From NCBI RefSeq assembly GCF_964204865.1, contig NC_135255.1:13640001-13704000 (forward strand): a DNA stretch of 64,000 nucleotides, given 5' to 3'. The translations under genes and the position numbers were made by a program. How positions within the stretch are numbered: the first letter of the stretch is position 1; each line of letters begins with the position of its first letter. The notes under the pieces are model-generated. The model saw only the letters and a program-made list of their open reading frames with translations, did no database searches and was not told the DNA's origin. This document shows positions 35,960 through 48,926 of this stretch, one piece after another. The stretch is from Styela clava. Taxonomy: Eukaryota.

Positions 35960-38900
35960 ATGTCTGCGTTAGGGAAGTTCTCAAAGATTCGAAGACTTAA
36001 TGGTAACGATGATGTGGAGACTTCTCCCGGAATTACCACCGATCCTAATCATACTATTTTTATTGGAGTTTTGACAGGTATATCATGTATTTCGTTACCA
36101 ATGTTACCATGTTTTTGTTTATGTGTTATATAGTGAATTGGACAGTATATTTGGTGTTGTAGGAATATTCCAATTAAGGATTGGAAAATGCAGGTACTTG
36201 TAAAGCTTAATTTCTGAAATCTCTAAATTTCAGTGATATTATAAGTTAAAAATCTTTATTGCAATTTTCTCATAAAGTCTGATTTCATTATCAGAATTGT
36301 ATTTGTACTTTTTCTCTTGTTTTTGATTTTTACTGAATTTATACCAAAAGCATAGTATTGTAAAGTGTAAACTAATATTTAAAATAACAATATATACGGT
36401 AACAATCATATGGTTGGTTACCTTCATGATTTACAAAGATGATCTGATTCGTCAATTAAATTGCCTCAAGCCAAAATACAATTCTGATTTAAATCCGAGA
36501 GAGTGGTTTGCAAGAAGCCAAAACGTTTCTTCAAATTTTTTATTTAAAGATACAAATATGTACAAATTCTATTTAAAACAATGTCACACAACCTTGTCAA
36601 AGAAATTGAATAACAACCAATAAACTCAAATCATAATATCTACCAAGTGATTCAAAGCACAGTTTTATTTTAGGACTATGAGATTTAGATATTTTTAGTT
36701 AAAAGCTTAAATAGGGGATTGGTGTAAAGCAAATGGAATAGGATGGATCCATTGCAAAATCAATAGTGAATAAGACATTCGATAATATCAAATAAATTTG
36801 GTAAGTTACGGAGTGCTGCAATGAATCTAAATTAATTATTGAAGAAATTAAATGCTATGCTTTTGCATTAGGGTTGGTTGGACGGTCCAATAGGTAATAT
36901 AATTTTGGACTGAACATTTATTATTGGTTACCTAATTCGATTCATAAATTACCCTTTCATAAAATGCAATCGTTAGTTTACCAAATTAAACAAATTGACT
37001 CGTTTCAATCAGTCGTTTACGTTTTTTTAGAAGTGCAATATTCCCCCTCATCTCGGTGATAATTTTTCTGCCTAAATAGTTTTGCAATCTAGAATTTTTG
37101 CGATTGAATATTGATCTATGTCTATGATATTCGTGAAATGACCCGAAACTATATTTCCTAATTGAAATAACATGTTCACATTATATTTAAATTGATGATT
37201 ATATATTTCTTAAAAACACTGAATTACTAATGGTAAATTTAATTTCATTATACATGATAAATTATTGGTTTTTCTATTGGTCTGCAGAAGGTATCTCGAA
37301 GAGGTTGCTAGTATCCAAATGTTCAAATGTGGAAAACTTCTCTGCAATTCAATTTCCTACTCTAGATTGATGCAGCAGTTATACAACAAGTTTTGACTAT
37401 GTTAATTAGACCTAAATATGAATAATTTGAATTGGAAGAAAGTTTTTTTAATCATTTAAATCTGTGGTATTCATAGAAATAATGGGCAATTTGTGCATGA
37501 CTGGGTGATTCCATAAATTACTCTCTATGATCATACTTCATAAATTTTCCTGTTTCAGTTAGCGACCGATGTGCGAGAGGAGAGAAAACTGATCTGAGTG
37601 GACCTTACTTACAACAAATATTACAGGAGTATACTGGGTATGTGTTAAAATTATAAACCATTTTTTAATAGAGACCGTAGACAACCAATAGGAATATGAT
37701 GAATACTTTATATAAGAGTTTGCAAAGGAAGGTTGCGAGCCCTCAACTGAAAATGGAATAAATGAGTATTGCTAAAAGATTTGCAAGCAAGCACTAGGGA
37801 TGTCAGTTTCAGAACTTCGAATCGATTGGAATTGATGTTGATTCGGAAGGCTTGATTCTATTTAAAAAAGAATTATATAGATAACACACTGCAATTGCAC
37901 GACACAGCGGCGTTGTCTCGATATCGACCAAGAGCTTTCATTTTCCTTACGTTTACAACTTTCCAAAGTCGTAACACTCCCAGAGTTGCATTATTTTTTT
38001 TATTTTGGTAGCAGGTTTAGAGAGACCAACTGTTTCGCTCAATTTTGTTTGACTACTAAAAATGTTACCAAGTTTCACAATCACAAATATTCTAATATAT
38101 AGTTAAACATTTCTTTAAATTATCTAAATAATATTTTTATAATTAAACAACATTGCTTCATACCTTCTCAAAAACAAGTCTGCGATGCTTCCATCGTTAT
38201 CATTTTTTTTTTTTAAATCACGGCGCAAACGGTACTAACCAGCGTTTATCATATAGAGGTGTCAATAGATACTGTAATTGTTGGCACGGGACATGAAACA
38301 ATTCAAGCTAACTCTGTCATGGAAACTCCTGAAATTTCATGAAGCAGAATATTTGGCTAGAACAATTCGATTTGTTTTTTCTTTGTTTCTTCTAATTAGC
38401 CGTCCTAATACTGTTTTCTATAATTCTAGATTTCGTTCTGCAATAAAAGTTTACAAAATCCTTCCGGATGAGTCGGACGAAATTGTGGTAAGGAATATAT
38501 TTTGATAAATCGTCTTGTTATACCGATAAATATAATGTACCGATTTTATATTTATATACTAAATGGGTATAAATATATTTATTCCAAAACATGCACAAAA
38601 TATTGCTTTTTCACAATATTTCGAATTTAATTGAAAACCCAATTTTAATTTGACTCAAATATGAATGAAATTGGCAAAAGGTTGAAAGACCTTTTTGCAA
38701 TTTTTTTTTCAATATTATCAGCTTTTGACTAAAATGATAGAAAAACACTAAAATATACACGATTCCAGCGTATTTTCATTTTGTTGAAATTATAAAGTTA
38801 TGATGTCCAGTAGCAGTAAGTAGCAGAGAAATGCTACATGTTCTTTTCAATATTGAAGAGCTTCATAGTTCTCTCGCTCAATGCAAATTTGCTTTTGGAA

Positions 38901-41900
38901 AAAATTTAAGTATCAGTGACTTGACAAAGTTGATTCACTGCATGATTAAACACTGTTTCTATTCATTTTCTTTTATTTAGGCAACTCTTGTGGACTGGTC
39001 TGATAATCTCAATTTAGAATTGATAATTACTACTGGAGGAACAGGATTAGGACCAAGAGACATCACCCCAGAAGCAACTGCTGCCGTCATTGAAAGAGAA
39101 ACTCCTGGATTTACGATTGCAATAATAACAGCATCACTTAAAGTAACCACAGATGCAATGGTGACAAGGTACGTTATAGTCATTTTTGGACATGAGGTAT
39201 ATGCATTCTTTACTTACATGTTTTGTGTGGTCCTGCATACCCTAGGAATTGATGGATAGCATAAGATGTTTCCTTCAAATACTGCACCAGGGAAAGGCAC
39301 ATGGACACTTTCATGTTATAGTTGAAAAATACTTGCTCAAAGAAGTCTGGCCATGGTCAGTTTGTGCGCATCAGTACTTGAAACCAATTATAACAAAGTA
39401 TAACTCTTGCCAGTATATTAACAGGCTCAACATATTATCACTTGTATAATGATGACAAATATAGTCCTAACGTTAATTTTCTTCTCCTTGTATGTTATGT
39501 TTTAAATACAAGATGCATTTATTTATATTTTTATTTAGACTGAAGAGTGGAATTAGAGGAAAAACTCTGATCATTAATCTGCCAGGAAGCAAGAAAGCAT
39601 CATCAGTGAGTGTTACAGTTAATCCTCTTAAAACTGTTGAATGTTATTGGCCATAATTATTTTAACACCTTACCAGATTAATTTACTAAATTCTAGACCA
39701 ACAAAGTTTCACAATTTCTGTGATGCCAGAAACCGAACAAGACTCAAAACAGCCTACTGTAATATATTAAATGAACTATTGCTTAAATAGAAATGCGTAC
39801 ATTTTTTAATAGGAATGTTTGAAAGTTGTTCTTCCTGCAATTCCACATGCAATAGAATGTCTGCAAGATGTCAAAGCCAGGATTTGCATTTGTACCTCCG
39901 TTGATGATTACCCGTAAGTACTTTTTATACGAGCAAGATCGCGAGAGCCCAAAACTGGTGAAAAGGTTACTAATATAAGAGATGTAACCTACTAATGCGT
40001 AAGATTTAATTTATATATATTTTTTTAATATGTTAGTAGGTAACAGACATTTTTTTTAAAAGATATTTTTTTCATTCCTTTTCTATAGACAGTAGGTTGA
40101 CTAGATTCCATAATTATTTACTTTGAGGCCTGATGCAGAATCCTAACTGCCAGTATTTTTATTCCTTTTCAGAGACGTTGAGGAAATCAAGAAAAATAGT
40201 AACGATGCACATGTGATCAAACCAACAATAGTTATTCAAACTAACAGTGGAAGTCTGGAACCTCAAGGGCATTCACAATTCCAATCCCAACATCATGTGG
40301 TAAGCAAAGCAAGCATGCAAAACATAGATAACTTATATAAATTTTTTATGCAAACTATCGTAAGCAGCTATCGCAGGATGTCCACTTACAGTTACAGCAG
40401 AGTTCAGGTTAATTAAGGTAAAAGCCTTCACTTTATTAATGCAAGGATGCAAGACTATGATAACCAAATTATTATGTTATTTAAAGATGTGTTAAAATAA
40501 TATTGCGTTTAATAAATTAATGAGTATTCACAGAGATGCAAAAAATCAAAGAAAAAGATGATTAAAATGAGTATCATTTTACATACATATCACTGCTGTT
40601 CTAATCCAGTGGTTCCCAACATGGGCTTCCATTATCTCCAGGAGTCCACAGACAGATTTTGATGGGTTTGTGCGCTTTGAATGTATAGTTTAAAAACGGT
40701 CAATGTCACGTCAACAAGTGCTTGGTACTGTGTCGTGTCTATGCTAGGGGTTTCTGAAATGAACAACTTTAATGATCTTTTGAATTTGAGGTGACTTTTT
40801 GTGCACCGATTTCACAGACCATAAGGCGTACTGTCAATAAATTGCTTAGATTCGATTTTTATTCATACATAAGGCGTGCCGGGCTATAAAATGCAATTGT
40901 TTTTAAAGCAATACTGGTACTAGTTTTGAGTGTATGCAATAAGCATGAAGTAGCCTACCTAATCCATACGTTGAGCACACCAGTTTACACGGCACATGAT
41001 CGATTTTTGAGAAAAATAGGATTCAAATTACGCCTTGGGGTCTGTTAAATACGGTACTTTAATGAAAAACATTGCTTCTAGTGGAGACAACATATATATA
41101 TAACAGTAAGCGATGGTTTCATTTAATAAAGGGGTTCGTAGCTTACAAGCATATCATCAAATAGTCCATCGCACTTTAAATTGAAAATCACTGTTTTATT
41201 CTGTCATAATATCGGTACTCCCGAAGTATGTGAACCAAGATGGCGGTCACCGGAACATAGGATATGTATCAGATTAGGGTTAGGCTATAATTTTATTCCA
41301 ATTTTAGTTCTATTACGAGTTTGGGGACTAGCCAAGTGACTAGTATTTGTACTTGGAATATGGCCTAACCTTAACCTGGTACACATACTATGTTTCGGTT
41401 TCCGCCATCTTGATTCACATACTTCGGGAGTACCATAATATCTACATTATAATTTCCGATGAATTTGTTATTTTAAGATTTAATTGAGATCGGTAATTTT
41501 ATATTATAGCTCATAAAATCCAAGAAGTTCTTCAATTTTTCGTAATCAAGTATATATACATATTTATAAATATACCCACAGGGCATGTGAAACGAGACTG
41601 CAGTATTTTGCCTTTTATATAATGTTTTCCGTTATGTAACATTATTTTCATTGGCCATTGTCAAACGTGAATATAGACAGGTTATATAATATTCACAATG
41701 ATTTTTTTCATTGGAAGTTCAAGGAAAAATTATGTAATAAAACTAAAAATTATTGTTTACAAATTTATTATATCTGTTCGGTCAAATTTTTTCAGTTCAT
41801 ATAAATTTGCTCAAAGCGGGATCGCGAGCTTTCAACTAAAAGACAAAAATTACTGCTAGAAAGAGTTGTAAAGACTGGTAATGGATCAAAAACATGGCGT

Positions 41901-44900
41901 ATGCTTATGAGGCTTGCAAACACAGATAGATGTGTTTTTTGTTGTTGATAATGTACAAATAAATAGATCAATATTATTGAATGTTGGGTTTCTAGAATGT
42001 CAACGGCAAAAAGTAAAGATAGTACTTCCTGCTTCATTTTTAAGACACGTATAATCAATTATCATTTAGAATTTCGAATGTAACGTATTTGTACGGATTC
42101 TAAGTGAACTGTCGATAAATTGCTTAGATTGGGTTTTTATTCATACATAAGGCACAACTGGTAAAGATTTTGAATGTAGGCAGTAAAGCATAAAGCACTA
42201 CCTGATTCATTCAGTGGGCGCATGATCGATTTTGGCGCACGATCAAAGCGGTAAAATACAGTATCTGAATTGATAAATCCATGACCGCGCACTGTCTTCC
42301 TCTAACCTAACCCAATGACCAGATTCGTCTACAGTACCATATAGCTGATGTATTTTTGAGGATTTTGAATATCATGTTTTTATGTTTGTTGATTTTAAAT
42401 CTATGATTTTTCTTAGAGTCTCCCTGAAAGAACGTTGATCAACTTTTCTGAAGAAGATTTGGCTGATGCTGACGTGGACTTGGAGAGTCTTCTGTCAAAT
42501 GTATTTTTATAAATTAATAATTTTTGCAAAAAATAAGATCATTGTTAAGTTAAATATGAGGATATCACTCTTATAGATATACTCAATATAAAGATCACTC
42601 ATCTTATACTCTACTATGAGATGATGTCATGTGAGACTCACTACTTATTCTTGCTGACTTATAATCAAGATGAGAAACTATGAATATTTTTTAAGAGTAT
42701 TTTAATCCTTTATATGCACAAGCGGAAGTTGATGCTTAGATAGTAAACTACTATCTTTTTAGTAATTTAGTTATATTTCAGATTCTCTCATCTGCTTTTC
42801 TATGCCCTAAATAAATATGAAATTATATTTTGTTAAATATAGTTTATCTTTATTTCAAACCTTGCTACTTTTTTCGCAGAATGCTACAAACTCTTCAACT
42901 GAAATCATATCGAAAAAAGAAGGTACAATTTTTAATTGATATTTGGTTGTTCTAATATTTTTTGTTTTACGTAACAATACCCTGAGATTTTATTAATTTT
43001 AATATGAATCGGGCTTTACAGAATCATATTTGACCGCTAATATATGGTTATATATAATAATATGGTTGTCTGTATTTTAATGGTTTGTTATTTTAAACTT
43101 GGATCCCAACTATTTTTAACGATAATACATGTAAAATCCGTGTTCTCTCATGACTTCAACCTAATTTAGATTACCCAGTAAGAATTGAGTGATTGTGATG
43201 ACTGATGATGCACTAAAACCAGTGGTGGTATTCAGGGGCTTTAGCGCCCTAGTTCTTTTTTAGGTGTTAGACTACAGCAACATTTGATTTGCACTGTATC
43301 TGTTGACGAGTGTTATATTTTGCGTTTCGAAACTTATAATTTGACTTTTATTTAAGGCATGTCATGTCAATGTAGCTCATGTAGTGGCTTTTGAATCTCG
43401 CCACTGACTCTATCTGACTGATAATGAGACCTTTACTAACAAAATGTTGATTAAAAAACTGTCTCGGTTTACAGAGTTACCCGCAACTTTTTTCAGCCTA
43501 TTATCCAAGAAAATTTATGTCTCTCTTTGTTTCTAGAGCAGGAATTCCCACCCTTAAGTGTACAAGGAGCTCTTGACACTGTTTTAAATACAACAGCAAC
43601 ACTCAAATCTGAAGAAGTAAGTTTGGCAGGGGCTTTTGGGAGGATTTTAGCTGAAGATGTGAGTGTTATACAACAAAACCAAACCCAAACTGCCGGGAGT
43701 AGTGGTTATGCACTTGCAGGTAAGTTATTCATATTTGTGATTAATTCTGTCTGCCAGAGAAAATGACCATCACTAATTACCAACCAGTATATCAGTAACA
43801 ATGATGTAATTTGATACTGCAAAATTTACTTAGCTTGCGTTAGAGCAGGGTGCCTCAAATGGGGCTCTCAGCGCCCTAGGGGCCAGCCATAAGCAAAGGC
43901 CTTCACTAGCATGGTTACATACCCAATCTTACGTATTAATTGGTAATCGGCGGTTAAACTTTAAATTGTTGTTTTCATTATAAGGTCATAGACTTCCCAG
44001 TTGAAATTCTCTGACACGCCAGTTTGTTGGCTTTTTATTATAAAATGTGGCAATTGAAGTATCTGATGAAATATCATTCAAAGCAAAACTACCATATATT
44101 ACGGCCAATAGGGCGCACTTTTTCCAATCTTATTTTTCTCTCAAAAACCGATCGTGCGTCTTTTGAGCCGGTGCACCTATTGTATGGACCAGGTAGTGCT
44201 TTATTCAGTTTATTGCATACACTCAAAATTAGTACTGGACACTGGTCTATTGTTTTATATACAAACTGCCGTCTTTAACTTCCTAAAAATCGATGTGGGC
44301 TCAATGGGCCTTGTATGAATCTCAAAAGTATGAATGTATGAATCTCAAAAGCTCAATCTAAGCAGCTTATTGACAGTGTGCCATATGATTCGTAAAATAC
44401 ATTATTTTTCTGAAAAGCATCCAGGCAACCCTCCCCCTCCCCCCTCATGGGGTCCAGATCTTGAGAGTCTTTGGAGGAAAGTTTGAGAACCACTGCACTA
44501 AGGCATAGTGACGGAGTGTATCCAAATTTAACATTATTTCTTATGTATATTGCACACATTATCAAAGAGTATAGAAAATTAAAACTACCATACCATTTTG
44601 TAATAAGACATAAAGTGGTATATTCGACTGTCAATAAAGCTCGCATTTCCAATGTTGTCCAGAATATCCTGAATACATAATTAATACAAATATCTATTTT
44701 TCTAGGTTCAGTATTGGCTGGAGAGATTCGAAACATCAATACAAAGGGAGTTTCGATTAATTATGACCAAGCGAGGCAAGTATCAGCTGGATCTCGTCTT
44801 CCGAGAGGAACAAACACAGTTGTGTCAGTTCGTGATACCAGACTATTGGTTGGAGTAAGTTTAAATAATTTTTCTAATGACATCAATGGTATTGGTACTA

Positions 44901-47900
44901 TAATGAGGATAGGTTACATATGCAGGCTATGGAAAGATGGATCTACTAGCATCACAGAATTCAAATTTTTTTGTACAACAAATTCTTATATTAAATAATT
45001 GGGATAATTAATATTATAGAATGACTTTGTTTTAGATACTGATAGATTACTGATATGATTGGAACTTTGCACCCCAAGTAAAATTATACATAAATAAAAA
45101 ACAATAAGATAGGGAAAATTGGAATAAAATTATGGCCTAACCCTAACCTGGTACACATACTACGTTCCGGTGTCCGCCATCTTGATTCACATACTTCGGG
45201 AGTACCAGCTACAATATTTACATTAATAAGAAAGAATTATTAAGCGACAGAAAGTTAATCAGGCAGTATAATCATGATGTACCAACAGTTGAGCATTCAA
45301 AATCAAACATGGCAGAAGCGCCAATATTCCATTTATCTTCTTGTTTTTGCAGAATAAGATTCAAGTTATTCAAAATGTGAGATCAGGTCAAGGAGTGCAG
45401 AATTCTCAGCTAAGTAACAGCCTTCGACCTTTGGTAAAGAAAGGAACCAAACTAGGACCGGCGAAAATTGGACAACTCACCACAAAAGGCATAACATCCG
45501 TCAGAACCTACAAAAATCCTGTGGTTGCTGTACTATCAGTTGGAAGACAGGTACCATAGTAATTCTATCTCCAATCTCATTTCTATATTTTTTGTTTATA
45601 GTTGTCTGACAACTCCCTTTAGTTGGGAATATCAAGTGTATTTGCAGTGCAGAACATTAATCACTCATTGGTACCATTACATATATTCAAACAGTGCACG
45701 AGGACACACATTTCCAACTTGGTTTCCGAAGTATATTTCCTTACACTCCTAAGCTTCTTGAACAAAAAGCTCTAAATTTAGACAAAAAACTCAACTCTTA
45801 ATGACAAGCAAATACATTTTTATTTTTGAAAAGTTAGTCTAATTTTTTCCCTAAATTCACATTCCTTTTTTAAATACTCATGTAAAAGGATATTGAAGCT
45901 ACAAATCACATAACAATACAATCGTCTCTTCGTCAACATTCGGTTGTTCCATTGGACATTGGCATCATATCAGAAGAAAAAGAAATTTTATTTGCATCTA
46001 TCAGCCAAGCTATAGCAAAAGGTAAGATGACCAGATAAGTTTCTATACCAGTTGTTTGCAAAAAACGTGTTCAAAAACAGGGTGTTCATAATGTCCAATT
46101 TTATTATTTTGTTACAAAGTCAGTTAGCAATATATTTTCTGTTTGTTTCATTTTATTCAGTGTCAATTCAAGTTTTTTTTTTCTTTATACACCTTTATTA
46201 TATCATATGCCCACCATTAAATGGATTAGACGAATCTGAAACGAACATTACAACAAATTACTGGTTAACTAACCATTCCTAAACCTGACATGAGCTGGTA
46301 ACAAGGCGAGAGGCGTATTTCATCATATGGTTTGGCTATCTTATTAGCTTTACTCTCCCCTGTGATAAATTTCCTAGAGCATTCGTAGCAAATGCTAATT
46401 CTATCTCACCGAAGAAATGTTGCGTCGCTTTATTTATTCTGCAGATATTATAATGGACTTCTTCGGAACTTACTCCTCTAAAAAAATATTTATTCCCGAA
46501 GTTTTTATTCCACGAACCTCAGTTGAATGGGTAACTCATCACCGCATACCTGTTTTCCTGATCGTATTAACAAACAACTGCTTCAAATCTAGCGACATTC
46601 GGTACTTACTAACTCGCAATACCCCACTATAAGTCTCAGTAGGTATTGGCACTTTAGTGGTCACCTGCTGCTTCCGCATTCTTTGAGAAAATTTGCTTAT
46701 AGAAAAATGTACAAACCATTATAAACATCTGGCATTACATGTATTTTCATGTGTGGCATAGCTGAGCAATGGTGGGGTTGTCTGCTATTTGGTTATTTTG
46801 ATACAAAACCTTTTACATCCAGCTGATGTTATTGTTATTGGAAGCAAATCAGAGGCCAGCAGAGATGTTATTAGATCACTGATTAGGAATAAATTTGAAG
46901 CCATTGTTCATTTCGGGACTGTTTCGATGCTTCCGTGGTAAGTATAAAAGTTGTTGCTAGAGTTCGTTCTCGGTAGGAAATTTGTTTTTAAATCAGTGGT
47001 ACACTCCGCAGACCTTCCTGCAAGACCGCCAGTCTGCAAAATTAGTTCTGCAATTTCCCAGTCCACAAAAAAAGTTGAGAACTACTGTTTTAAATGCTTA
47101 TCCTGTACACAAGGTCTTGGTTTTTCTAAAAGTTTGAATTTCTAGGGTACCGAGCTATTATGCTACAACGAGATATGAAACTGACAGAAAATTATTCTTT
47201 GTCCTACCAGGTGAGTGATGCATAATAATTTCTCATGTCGACTTGGCTTGCTCACCATCACTCAGGGTGTGATAGATTTGAGTAGGCGATGCCGAACTGG
47301 AAAGATTACGGTTCATCCAAACTTTATTAGATCCTTACCTAGTTGATTGTGCAAAATGGAAGATGTATGAGCACATCGCAGTAATTGTAACTTTGTGGTG
47401 TTCATATTTCCAGCGTATTGACCATTATGACATTTCCATTATTTTCTCAAGCGGGTCTCATCAAACTGGGGGTTCAAAAAGGCTCAATGGGGTCATTGGT
47501 TACCCATAATTGTCAGAACTAGCTATACTCGCTCTTCTTCTTTTATCCTTCTAATAGTTTTCGACACTAACTTAAACATCGATCAAACCGGAATCAAGCC
47601 AAGGATCGATCTTTTGTGTGACAATATTCACCTCGGTCTCATTAAAGTTCCTGAGGGCCGCAAAAAAAAAAAATTGTCTTTTTAGAATACAATTATGAAG
47701 CTTGTGTATAAGGGGTGCATCTTGCAAAAGTACAGTGGTATACTATACCTTAAACGACATGCTATTTACAAGGAAAAATCATTATGTACGAATTGAACTA
47801 ATCATAATTATCTTGTTTATTAAGAGTGTCCTTTGGCAAGTATTCTGTGCACATTGTATATTGTTCCTGCTTTGAGAAAATTGGGAGGTCTTGAAAATAC

Positions 47901-48926
47901 AAAGAATACTGTAATCAAAGCTAAGGTATTGATCTTTGTTTATGTCTCACAGTATGGAAAAATTATAGAAAAGAAAATGACCTAAGAAAACTGTAATTTC
48001 TTCTCGACATCAATCAAGAATATAGCATATCACTAACTAATCTGTTGAGGTTTATTTTCCTAAGGTCGTTCACACTTCTTAAAAGAGTTATTACTGGACA
48101 TTTCATGGTTTCGCGTAAATTGGTTGTTAGTTAGGTCCAGGGTTATACGGATTGTCTTGTTCCTAAATTTGTGACCTTGATATTGAGTCTGGGACTCGAG
48201 CGACATACAGGGATGTACAAAATGAATTTTATGTATTGGGAATGTTTTCATTTTAAGGCATTTAATATCTGATTGTCAGACAAAAAATAAACCAATTTTA
48301 CACCTCCAGCTCAAACATAGAAAAAATTCGTTATATTCGAATGAATAAAGATGTGTGAAATTCATTATACAATTCTTACCATACGTGTGTTTTAGTTTAG
48401 TTTGTCTTTTTATATTTACCTGTATTTCGAGGACCCTTAATTTGGATATACTTCATCTGGGTCCAGTTACTGTGAGACTCAGACCACCAAGTCAAGTCGT
48501 GAGATCTTCTTCGCTTGACTGTGTTGGGTCTCGAACGTATTTTCCTGTGGTCTCTGTTTTAACTGTGAAGCTGCCTCATAATAAACCACAAATCCGGAAT
48601 CTTCTGATTCTTTCAACACACAGAATAAAATCCATTTTCTGTGACACATGCTAATAAATTCAGTTAGGTTATAAGTAATCATGTTTCCTTCATTTATTTA
48701 GTTGTCAAATGACCAACCGCTCAAACAAGATCCAGAATATTTGCAATGTCAAGTTAGCTGGCGACCACAAGAAACCGTTCCATTTGTGGAAAACATTGGG
48801 ATCAACTTGGGTGAACAAGAAGCTTACGATGCCAGTGCAATTCTTGTGCTTCCAGCCAAAAGTAATCAGTTGTCTTTACTGAGAAAGGGAGATACCGTTG
48901 ACATTATTTTAATAAGAAGTGTTTGA
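35960..48926 (+). CDS. GPHN: Gephyrin-like protein (MogA/G domain - linker - divergent MoeA/E domain); exons approx. 35960-36077, 37559-37637, 38430-38487, 38981-39168, 39539-39605, 39812-39912, 40173-40299, 42417-42500, 42880-42922, 43537-43719, 44706-44854, 45353-45550, 45889-46021, 46823-46937, 47146-47211, 47825-47925, 48702-48926
   Basis: G domain: IGVLTVSDRC, DLSGP, LPDE, TTGGTGLGPRDITPEAT, GIRGKTLIINLPGSKKA, PAIPHA. E-domain framework: FPPLSV, GRILAEDV, GYA, KGTKLGP, PVVAVLS, HFGTV, VPALRKL, PEY, LRKGDTVDI. All junctions are GT-AG and in phase, with no premature stop found. Confidence 0.9.
41214..41434. mobile_element. MITE family A, full copy
   Basis: TIRs GGTACTCCCGAAGTATGTGAACCAAGATGGCGG / CCGCCATCTTGATTCACATACTTCGGGAGTACC. 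TSD ATAATATC at 41206-41213 and 41435-41442. Confidence 0.9.
45060..45206. mobile_element. MITE family A, partial copy (right arm)
   Basis: GGCCTAACCCTAACCTGGTACACATACTACGTTCCGGTGTCCGCCATCTTGATTCACATACTTCGGGAGTACC matches the copies at 7440 and 41214. Confidence 0.8.

Follow-up and report, generated by a model that had tools for sequence, protein, structure and literature searches.

A stretch of 64,000 nucleotides from the ascidian Styela clava (assembly GCF_964204865.1, contig NC_135255.1, positions 13,640,001 to 13,704,000; hereafter the window) carries at 35960-48926 on the + strand a gene named 'gephyrin-like' [Styela clava] in RefSeq, here called gene B. Its product, XP_039253964.2 (P0006), has 677 amino acids encoded by 17 exons and consists of a MogA-like G domain, a linker and a MoeA-like E domain. 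Most of the residues regarded as vital in the E domain of eukaryotic molybdenum (Mo) insertases are replaced in gene B, the G domain is canonical in its motifs, and a second, canonical gephyrin gene (paralogue A) lies elsewhere on the same contig. A comparison of P0006 with the window by tblastn yielded 17 collinear pieces on the + strand, the exon cores being 100% identical. P0006 is the newer RefSeq version of the product; the older version, XP_039253964.1 (P0001, 677 amino acids, 99% identical, 'gephyrin-like [Styela clava]'), was retrieved with the last E-domain exon alone as query. The features of the gene are as follows.

35960..36076, +, exon 1: N-terminal tail with the start codon; disorder is predicted (P0006 residues 1-39 100% identical; predicted local distance difference test, pLDDT, <50 for residues 1-27)
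37552..39947, +, G (MogA-like) domain, five exons with approximate borders from high-scoring segment pairs, 37552-37641, 38431-38487, 38981-39169, 39537-39620 and 39813-39947 (Pfam MoCF_biosynth)
40168..42921, +, linker (C-domain) exons at about 40168-40299, 42417-42500 and 42868-42921, predicted to be disordered (pLDDT <50 for residues 201-289)
43537..43719, +, E exon 1: Asp of DGYA replaced by Ser; gephyrin D327 replaced by Q and F330 by L (alignment; the exon alone matches Pfam MoeA_N, E = 3.8e-4)
44706..44854, +, E exon 2: SAGSR in place of TTGAP, VRDT in place of VEDT (alignment)
45353..45550, +, E exon 3: VQNSQLS in place of IRPIGHD, SVGRQ in place of STGNE (Cnx1E T198 to V, E201 to Q; PDB phmmer match to GephE, 31 bits)
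45889..46021, +, E exon 4: about 12 loop residues after STGNE missing; IEATN in place of IRDSN, IISE in place of IVGD (D242 to E; alignment)
46823..46937, +, E exon 5: GSKSEASRD in place of SGGVSMGEKD (D274 kept), MLPW in place of MKPG (K294 to L, G296 to W; alignment)
47146..47210, +, E exon 6 (fit to P0006)
47825..47925, +, E exon 7: LPECPLA in place of LPGNPVS (S328 to A; alignment)
48702..48926, +, E exon 8 and stop codon: KQDPEY in place of DPRPEY (R369 to D), NIGINLGEQ in place of STGNQMSSRL (S400 to G; PDB phmmer match to GephE, 32.6 bits)

The eight E exons encode P0006 residues 290-677. Their borders were fitted by guiding the search with the coordinates and the P0006 protein, and the fit bears out both the position and the open eight-exon chain that a preliminary description, made from the letters of the sequence, had given for the E domain. 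All acceptors are AG, each of the seven E-domain introns begins with a GT donor, the phases fit together and no internal stop is present. Neither a disrupted frame nor a disrupted splice site was found: 17 of 17 exons are open, and the splice sites of the E exons are canonical. E exon 4 cannot be extended upstream, because an in-frame TAA stands just before its acceptor. When the E domain of paralogue A and vertebrate gephyrin were searched against the whole window by tblastn, each E segment gave one match, always on a modelled exon. Alternative exons that would restore the canonical motifs were accordingly rejected, no such exons being found within the window.

In an alignment with vertebrate, fungal and bacterial MoeA proteins and gephyrins, every motif replacement that had been reported for the E domain was recovered at its position. 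The motif PPFxxSxxDGYA reads QTQTAGSSGYA, STGNE reads SVGRQ, after which about 12 residues are missing, LPGNP reads LPECP in P0006 and LPDCP in the older version P0001, NLGEQ stands in place of QMSSRL, and the nucleotide-binding loop SGGVSMG is gone. The E exons match the gephyrin E domain (GephE) of the PDB with E ~1e-6 each (phmmer), and the whole of P0006 clears the thresholds of the Pfam families MoCF_biosynth and MoeA_N (46 bits for the latter, cut-off 30.8). MoeA_C was not detected by sequence in a Pfam scan of the protein. The E. coli MoeA model gave 89.7 bits for the gene B protein, as against 326.1 bits for vertebrate gephyrin. Among 36 reference MoeA proteins and gephyrins, 44 columns were at least 90% conserved; gene B keeps 23 of these near-invariant columns, the references 77-100% (median 98%). 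The earlier statement that most conserved motifs are replaced thus holds, with the refinement that the E domain is a numerical outlier as well as poor in motifs. The replaced motifs presumably include the positions D59, T100, E188, D228 and S371 of E. coli MoeA. These five positions are mutated in solved MoeA variants, as given by the titles of the PDB entries.

The residues of gene B were then read in Cnx1E numbering; positions were counted on the Cnx1 sequence given in PMC13262936, and the count fits all named residues. D274, K294, G296, K297, S328, R369 and S400 are listed as vitally important in eukaryotic Mo-insertases (PMC13262936, Table 2), and the positions other than K297 are 92-100% conserved in 264 eukaryotic insertases, with like-for-like exceptions only (PMC13262936). 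The K297 position is already Leu in animals, namely in 95% of the invertebrate and all of the vertebrate insertases surveyed (PMC13262936). At the seven positions gene B has D, L, W, V, A, D and G, respectively; hence, of the six vital residues that remain when K297 is set aside, D274 alone is retained and five are replaced non-conservatively. The Mg-water-shell is formed by T198, E201, D242 and D274 of Cnx1E, and the conservative exchange D274E alone abolishes Cnx1E activity and hydrolysis of adenylated molybdopterin (MPT-AMP) (PMC6954367). The corresponding residues of gene B are V, Q, E and D, three of the four being replaced. From these residues, the E domain of gene B looks catalytically dead. 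In vertebrate GephE, receptor binding depends chiefly on F330 and D327 (PMC6143783); in the alignment, gene B has Leu and Gln at these two positions and paralogue A has Leu and Asp.

To the degree that structure prediction can tell, the domain has nevertheless kept its shape. An AlphaFold2 (AF2) model of P0006, computed from an alignment of 37 sequences, had a mean pLDDT of 75, with values mostly of 70-95 in the E domain and a disordered linker. Confidence dips at the former active-site loops, where ten-residue blocks average a pLDDT of 66-77 and values below 50 are seen at residues 419-422. Foldseek placed the model on GephE and Cnx1E over approximately 416 columns with template modelling (TM) scores of 0.72-0.77. 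In the model, the MoeA fold with its subdomains I-IV is kept. Residues 290-677 were also predicted to form a homodimer, with an interface score (ipSAE) of 0.77 compared to 0.00 for the best control; three runs agreed in at least 76% of contacts, and the pLDDT of the partners was at least 86. Among proteins solved as one-chain pairs, 21 out of 30 reach the mark used for a dimer, compared to none of the 23 whose solved structure is a single chain. The predicted interface, residues 432-443 against 469-483, is the canonical MoeA interface.

The two RefSeq versions of the product, P0001 and P0006, differ at seven residues (249, 316, 365, 392, 436, 437 and 570), six of them in the E domain and none in the G domain. 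Residues 436 and 437 fall within the predicted dimer interface and residue 570 within the degenerate LPGNP motif.

The G-domain motifs VSDRC, LPDE, TTGGTGLGPRD and INLPGS are canonical in gene B, and all those that had been described as such are present in P0006. Pfam MoCF_biosynth matches residues 36-182 of P0006 with 130 bits, and the MogA model NF006932 gives 129.7 bits for gene B, close to the 136.8 bits of vertebrate gephyrin, with which the G domain shares 54.3% identity. The catalytic Asp pair of this domain is D61/D94 in gephyrin, equivalent to D515/D548 in Cnx1G (PMC9458074). Both residues are retained in gene B, as the Asp of LPDE and the Asp of PRD. Since the catalytic Asp residues are kept and the rate of the domain is not accelerated (see below), the G domain of gene B most likely still adenylates molybdopterin.

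The linkers of the two Styela paralogues are disordered and otherwise unrelated, but each contains an acidic motif rich in Asp and Leu, EEDLADADVDLESLL in gene B (window 42417-42500) and DLELDDADLDSDLSL in paralogue A (near C6:4443080-4443170, C6 being the contig that holds both genes). This motif was not seen in the linker of vertebrate gephyrin.

Paralogue A was located by Pfam scans of the whole 377 Mb assembly, in which MoeA_N, MoCF_biosynth and MoeA_C exons were found at C6:4.435-4.453 Mb. The gene (C6:4434840-4452944) lies on the same contig and strand as gene B, at a distance of 9.2 Mb. Its E domain (432 codons) and its G domain have open frames, every canonical motif is present, and 42 of the 44 conserved columns and all six vital Cnx1E residues are kept. 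One suggestion of the preliminary description, that another gene supplies Mo insertion, was therefore right. All seven E-domain introns of gene B are identical in position and phase to introns of paralogue A, which has one extra. Because these introns are common to both genes, gene B is a duplicate made at the level of DNA and not a retrocopy, and a retrogene origin was rejected. The third and only other MoCF_biosynth locus of the genome (C9:12099283-12099694, - strand) is not a gephyrin gene; it encodes the N-terminal domain of FAD synthase (FLAD1), its best PDB match being the flavin adenine dinucleotide (FAD) synthase 8ron with E = 9e-10. To confirm FLAD1 at this locus, the genome was also scanned for PAPS_reduct, with no matches.

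Some further features of the two genes were noted. E exon 1 of gene B (43537-43719) corresponds to two exons in paralogue A (C6:4445190-4446931), reflecting either intron loss in B or intron gain in A. Paralogue A reads MKPGKP in exons E5-E6 (C6:4449847-4450690), with Lys at the K297 position as in plants. A short repeat, probably MITE-like (resembling miniature inverted-repeat transposable elements), occurs in introns of both paralogues (window 41214-41454 and 45104-45220; C6:4438108-4438309, 4446695-4446823 and 4449496-4449556), where tblastx aligned non-coding stretches with one another at 60-100% identity.

The two domains of gene B have diverged to very different extents. The E domain is 32.8% identical to that of vertebrate gephyrin, compared to 52.0% for paralogue A, and the E domains of the two paralogues share 33.7% identity. 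In maximum-likelihood trees, the terminal branch of the E domain measured 1.54 in gene B and 0.47 in paralogue A, whereas the G-domain branches were 0.49 and 0.48, respectively. The E domain of gene B has thus evolved approximately 3.3 times faster than that of paralogue A, and constraint is relaxed or redirected in the E domain of gene B only. When the E-domain coding sequence of gene B was subjected to random substitution, the share of trials in which the frame stayed open was 1.2% with 0.1 substitutions per site and 0.07% with 0.2; the excess divergence of gene B lies far above 0.1-0.2 substitutions per site. GC content at the three codon positions was 0.50/0.41/0.285 in the E exons of gene B and 0.505/0.426/0.312 in paralogue A, compared to 0.35 in introns.

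Homologues of gene B were sought with several queries. The E part of P0006 retrieved Styela itself, distant bacterial MoeA proteins and a few fungal two-domain proteins only; with the whole of P0006, vertebrate gephyrins dominated and no tunicate entry was among the matches listed; exon E3 alone gave no matches. A search with the last exon of gene B brought up two short, open fragments, P0002 (57 bits) and P0003 (44 bits), from two further public assemblies, and in the same search no canonical gephyrin cluster reached E = 0.001. Both fragments share states specific to gene B: in PEYxRC the Arg is Gln, the R369 equivalent is lost, STG reads VE-x-I and LPP reads LPA. This points to genes of the B type in at least two further species. 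By these sequence measures, gene B is not in plain decay: its frame is open, its codon composition is coding-like, its G domain has evolved at the rate of paralogue A, and B-type fragments occur elsewhere.

The genome of Styela clava also holds SUOX, a cluster of xanthine dehydrogenase/aldehyde oxidase (XDH/AOX) genes, MoaC and MoaE, and the metabolism of the molybdenum cofactor (Moco) looks ordinary. Two implications had been drawn from the state of the E domain, namely that another gene supplies Mo insertion or that the Moco pathway is remodelled in this lineage. The first is answered by paralogue A; the second was rejected, since the presence of these pathway genes makes a remodelled pathway unnecessary. 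The XDH/AOX cluster is a tandem array at C3:15545000-15636000 with at least five genes of the XDH/aldehyde-oxidase type on both strands, recognised by repeated sets of MoCoBD_1 exons; single further matches were seen on contigs C10 and C13.

Taken together, gene B is probably a retained protein-coding paralogue of gephyrin in which the E domain is a pseudoenzyme, the G domain is likely to be active and Mo insertion is left to paralogue A. The term half-pseudoenzyme gephyrin, proposed in the preliminary description, is supported at the level of sequence, with five of the six vital and three of the four Mg-shell residues replaced and the Asp pair of the G domain kept. We envisage that a gephyrin gene encoding G domain, linker and E domain was duplicated at the DNA level, giving rise to gene B. 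The E domain of this copy would have kept the fold of four subdomains and the canonical dimer interface and lost the residues of the Mg-water-shell, those that bind molybdate and those that contact Moco-AMP; because of these losses it would be unable to hydrolyse MPT-AMP or to insert Mo. The G domain would still adenylate molybdopterin, and Mo insertion in Styela clava would be carried out by paralogue A. The gene B protein, whose oligomeric state is predicted from the model, may form oligomers of G trimers and E dimers in which the dead E domain acts solely as a module for dimerisation or docking.

Several points weigh against this reading. The loss of E-domain activity is deduced from residues, and the expression and splicing of gene B are those predicted by the RefSeq model. 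The predicted dimer may be a memory of solved GephE dimers, and the AF2 fold draws on aligned canonical MoeA proteins. The fragment P0002 scores nearly equally with paralogue A (150) and gene B (158); P0002 and P0003 cover the last exon only. Selection on the G domain upstream could account in part for the open frame of the E exons. A premature stop there would lead to decay of the mRNA and thereby cost the G domain as well, so that the open frame says less about whether the E domain itself has a function. A catalytic G domain in gene B would moreover duplicate that of paralogue A, and the retention of both is unexplained. Finally, the node that joins A, B and the vertebrate genes is a polytomy in the trees.

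The main rival holds that gene B has been fully neofunctionalised as a dedicated scaffold or regulator, which takes no part in Moco synthesis, serves only as an oligomeric scaffold or binding partner, for example at synapses, at the cytoskeleton or of paralogue A, and keeps its G domain for trimerisation and not for catalysis. This would explain the E domain equally well, namely its fold and predicted dimer without catalytic residues, and it has precedents in members of the MoeA family with roles outside Moco synthesis, Glp (PMC11733289) and LIN-46 (bioRxiv 10.1101/698977); the acidic linker motif common to paralogues A and B would also fit. It does not explain the unrelaxed active site of the G domain. 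Were the role of this domain structural only, its active-site residues should have relaxed as those of the E domain have, yet the G domain shows no acceleration (0.49 compared to 0.48), both catalytic Asp residues and a full score with the MogA model. In addition, the determinants by which GephE binds receptors are not kept in gene B (F330 to L, D327 to Q). On balance we consider this rival unlikely.

It is very improbable that gene B is a young or unexpressed pseudogene in plain decay, with a RefSeq model that is merely ab initio. The strong divergence of the E domain, where six of the seven differences between P0001 and P0006 fall, is what such decay would produce. However, a chain of 17 exons with intact frame and canonical splice sites is not, given that drift of 0.1-0.2 substitutions per site almost always introduces stops, and neither are the retained coding-type composition of the codon positions, a G domain as constrained as in paralogue A, or B-type last exons that are open in two other assemblies. 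Still less credible is an E domain that remains an insertase by means of different residues, or that handles another metal or substrate. The D274 equivalent and the overall architecture of the cleft are retained, as this would require, but five positions at which 264 eukaryotic insertases show like-for-like changes only carry non-conservative exchanges in gene B (K to L, G to W, R to D, S to A and S to G), the nucleotide-binding loop SGGVSMG is missing, and model confidence is low at the former active-site loops (pLDDT 66-77, <50 for residues 419-422). Hardly to be entertained is a mis-modelled gene whose real transcript regains the canonical motifs from alternative intronic exons, as each E segment has a single tblastn match in the window, on a modelled exon, the exon after SVGRQ is blocked upstream by an in-frame stop, and the intron positions match those of paralogue A.

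A wider picture may be sketched, although we regard it as rather doubtful. Ascidians might have split the jobs of gephyrin, with paralogue A making Moco and gene B, conserved across several species, acting as an oligomeric scaffold or regulator that is built on a dead MoeA dimer and inserts no Mo. Gene B might then organise receptors, or dock onto paralogue A and hand over MPT-AMP, and it would amount to a naturally occurring separation-of-function allele of gephyrin in the group that is sister to the vertebrates.

Gephyrin is a textbook moonlighting protein, which acts in Moco synthesis and in the clustering of inhibitory receptors. Animals have been described as having a single gephyrin copy for both jobs (PMC11733289), and the catalytic residues of the E domain as essentially invariant across eukaryotic insertases (PMC13262936). 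Gene B would be a counter-example, a chordate gene that is a second, long-retained gephyrin and has lost the chemistry of the E domain and not that of the G domain. It could serve as a natural experiment on which parts of the E domain meet non-catalytic needs, and as a handle on how an enzyme domain turns into a structural module. It also cautions against assigning the function 'Mo-insertase' to every 'gephyrin-like' protein in RefSeq.

Among known systems, vertebrate gephyrin (GPHN) and paralogue A have the architecture of G domain, linker and E domain in common with gene B. The last exon of gene B shows similarity specific to gephyrin, and its predicted E domain has the GephE fold. Unlike GPHN and paralogue A, gene B lacks the equivalents of K294, G296, S328, R369, S400, T198, E201 and D242 of Cnx1E, the loop of about 12 residues and the MoeA_C signature. 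The teleost pair gphna/gphnb is akin to genes A and B in that two gephyrin genes reside in one chordate genome; however, both teleost proteins have all three Pfam domains and are alike in score, with no such degeneration of the E domain.

LIN-46 consists of a MoeA-like part only. This protein of C. elegans belongs to the MoeA/gephyrin family and has a role outside Moco synthesis, restraining the nuclear accumulation of HBL-1 (bioRxiv 10.1101/698977). Its likeness to gene B, as an animal protein of the family with a non-Moco role in LIN-46, is one of kind and not of clade. The actinobacterial MoeA paralogue Glp coexists with a canonical copy and keeps fold and dimer, and its poorly conserved active site has been read as a loss of Moco synthesis (PMC11733289). 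Akin to gene B, Glp (PDB 8bve/8bvf) is a MoeA-fold paralogue beside a canonical copy, and it was among the structural matches of the gene B model. It differs in being bacterial, in being a single domain without fused MogA and in binding FtsZ in the divisome; the Glp model gave 88.5 bits on the gene B protein against a cut-off of 475, so that gene B is not a member of this family. A fused, canonical-looking G domain sets gene B apart from both LIN-46 and Glp. What gene B has in common with repurposed or pseudoenzyme MoeA proteins is a canonical copy in the same genome and a degenerate active site within a kept fold and a dimer, the latter predicted.

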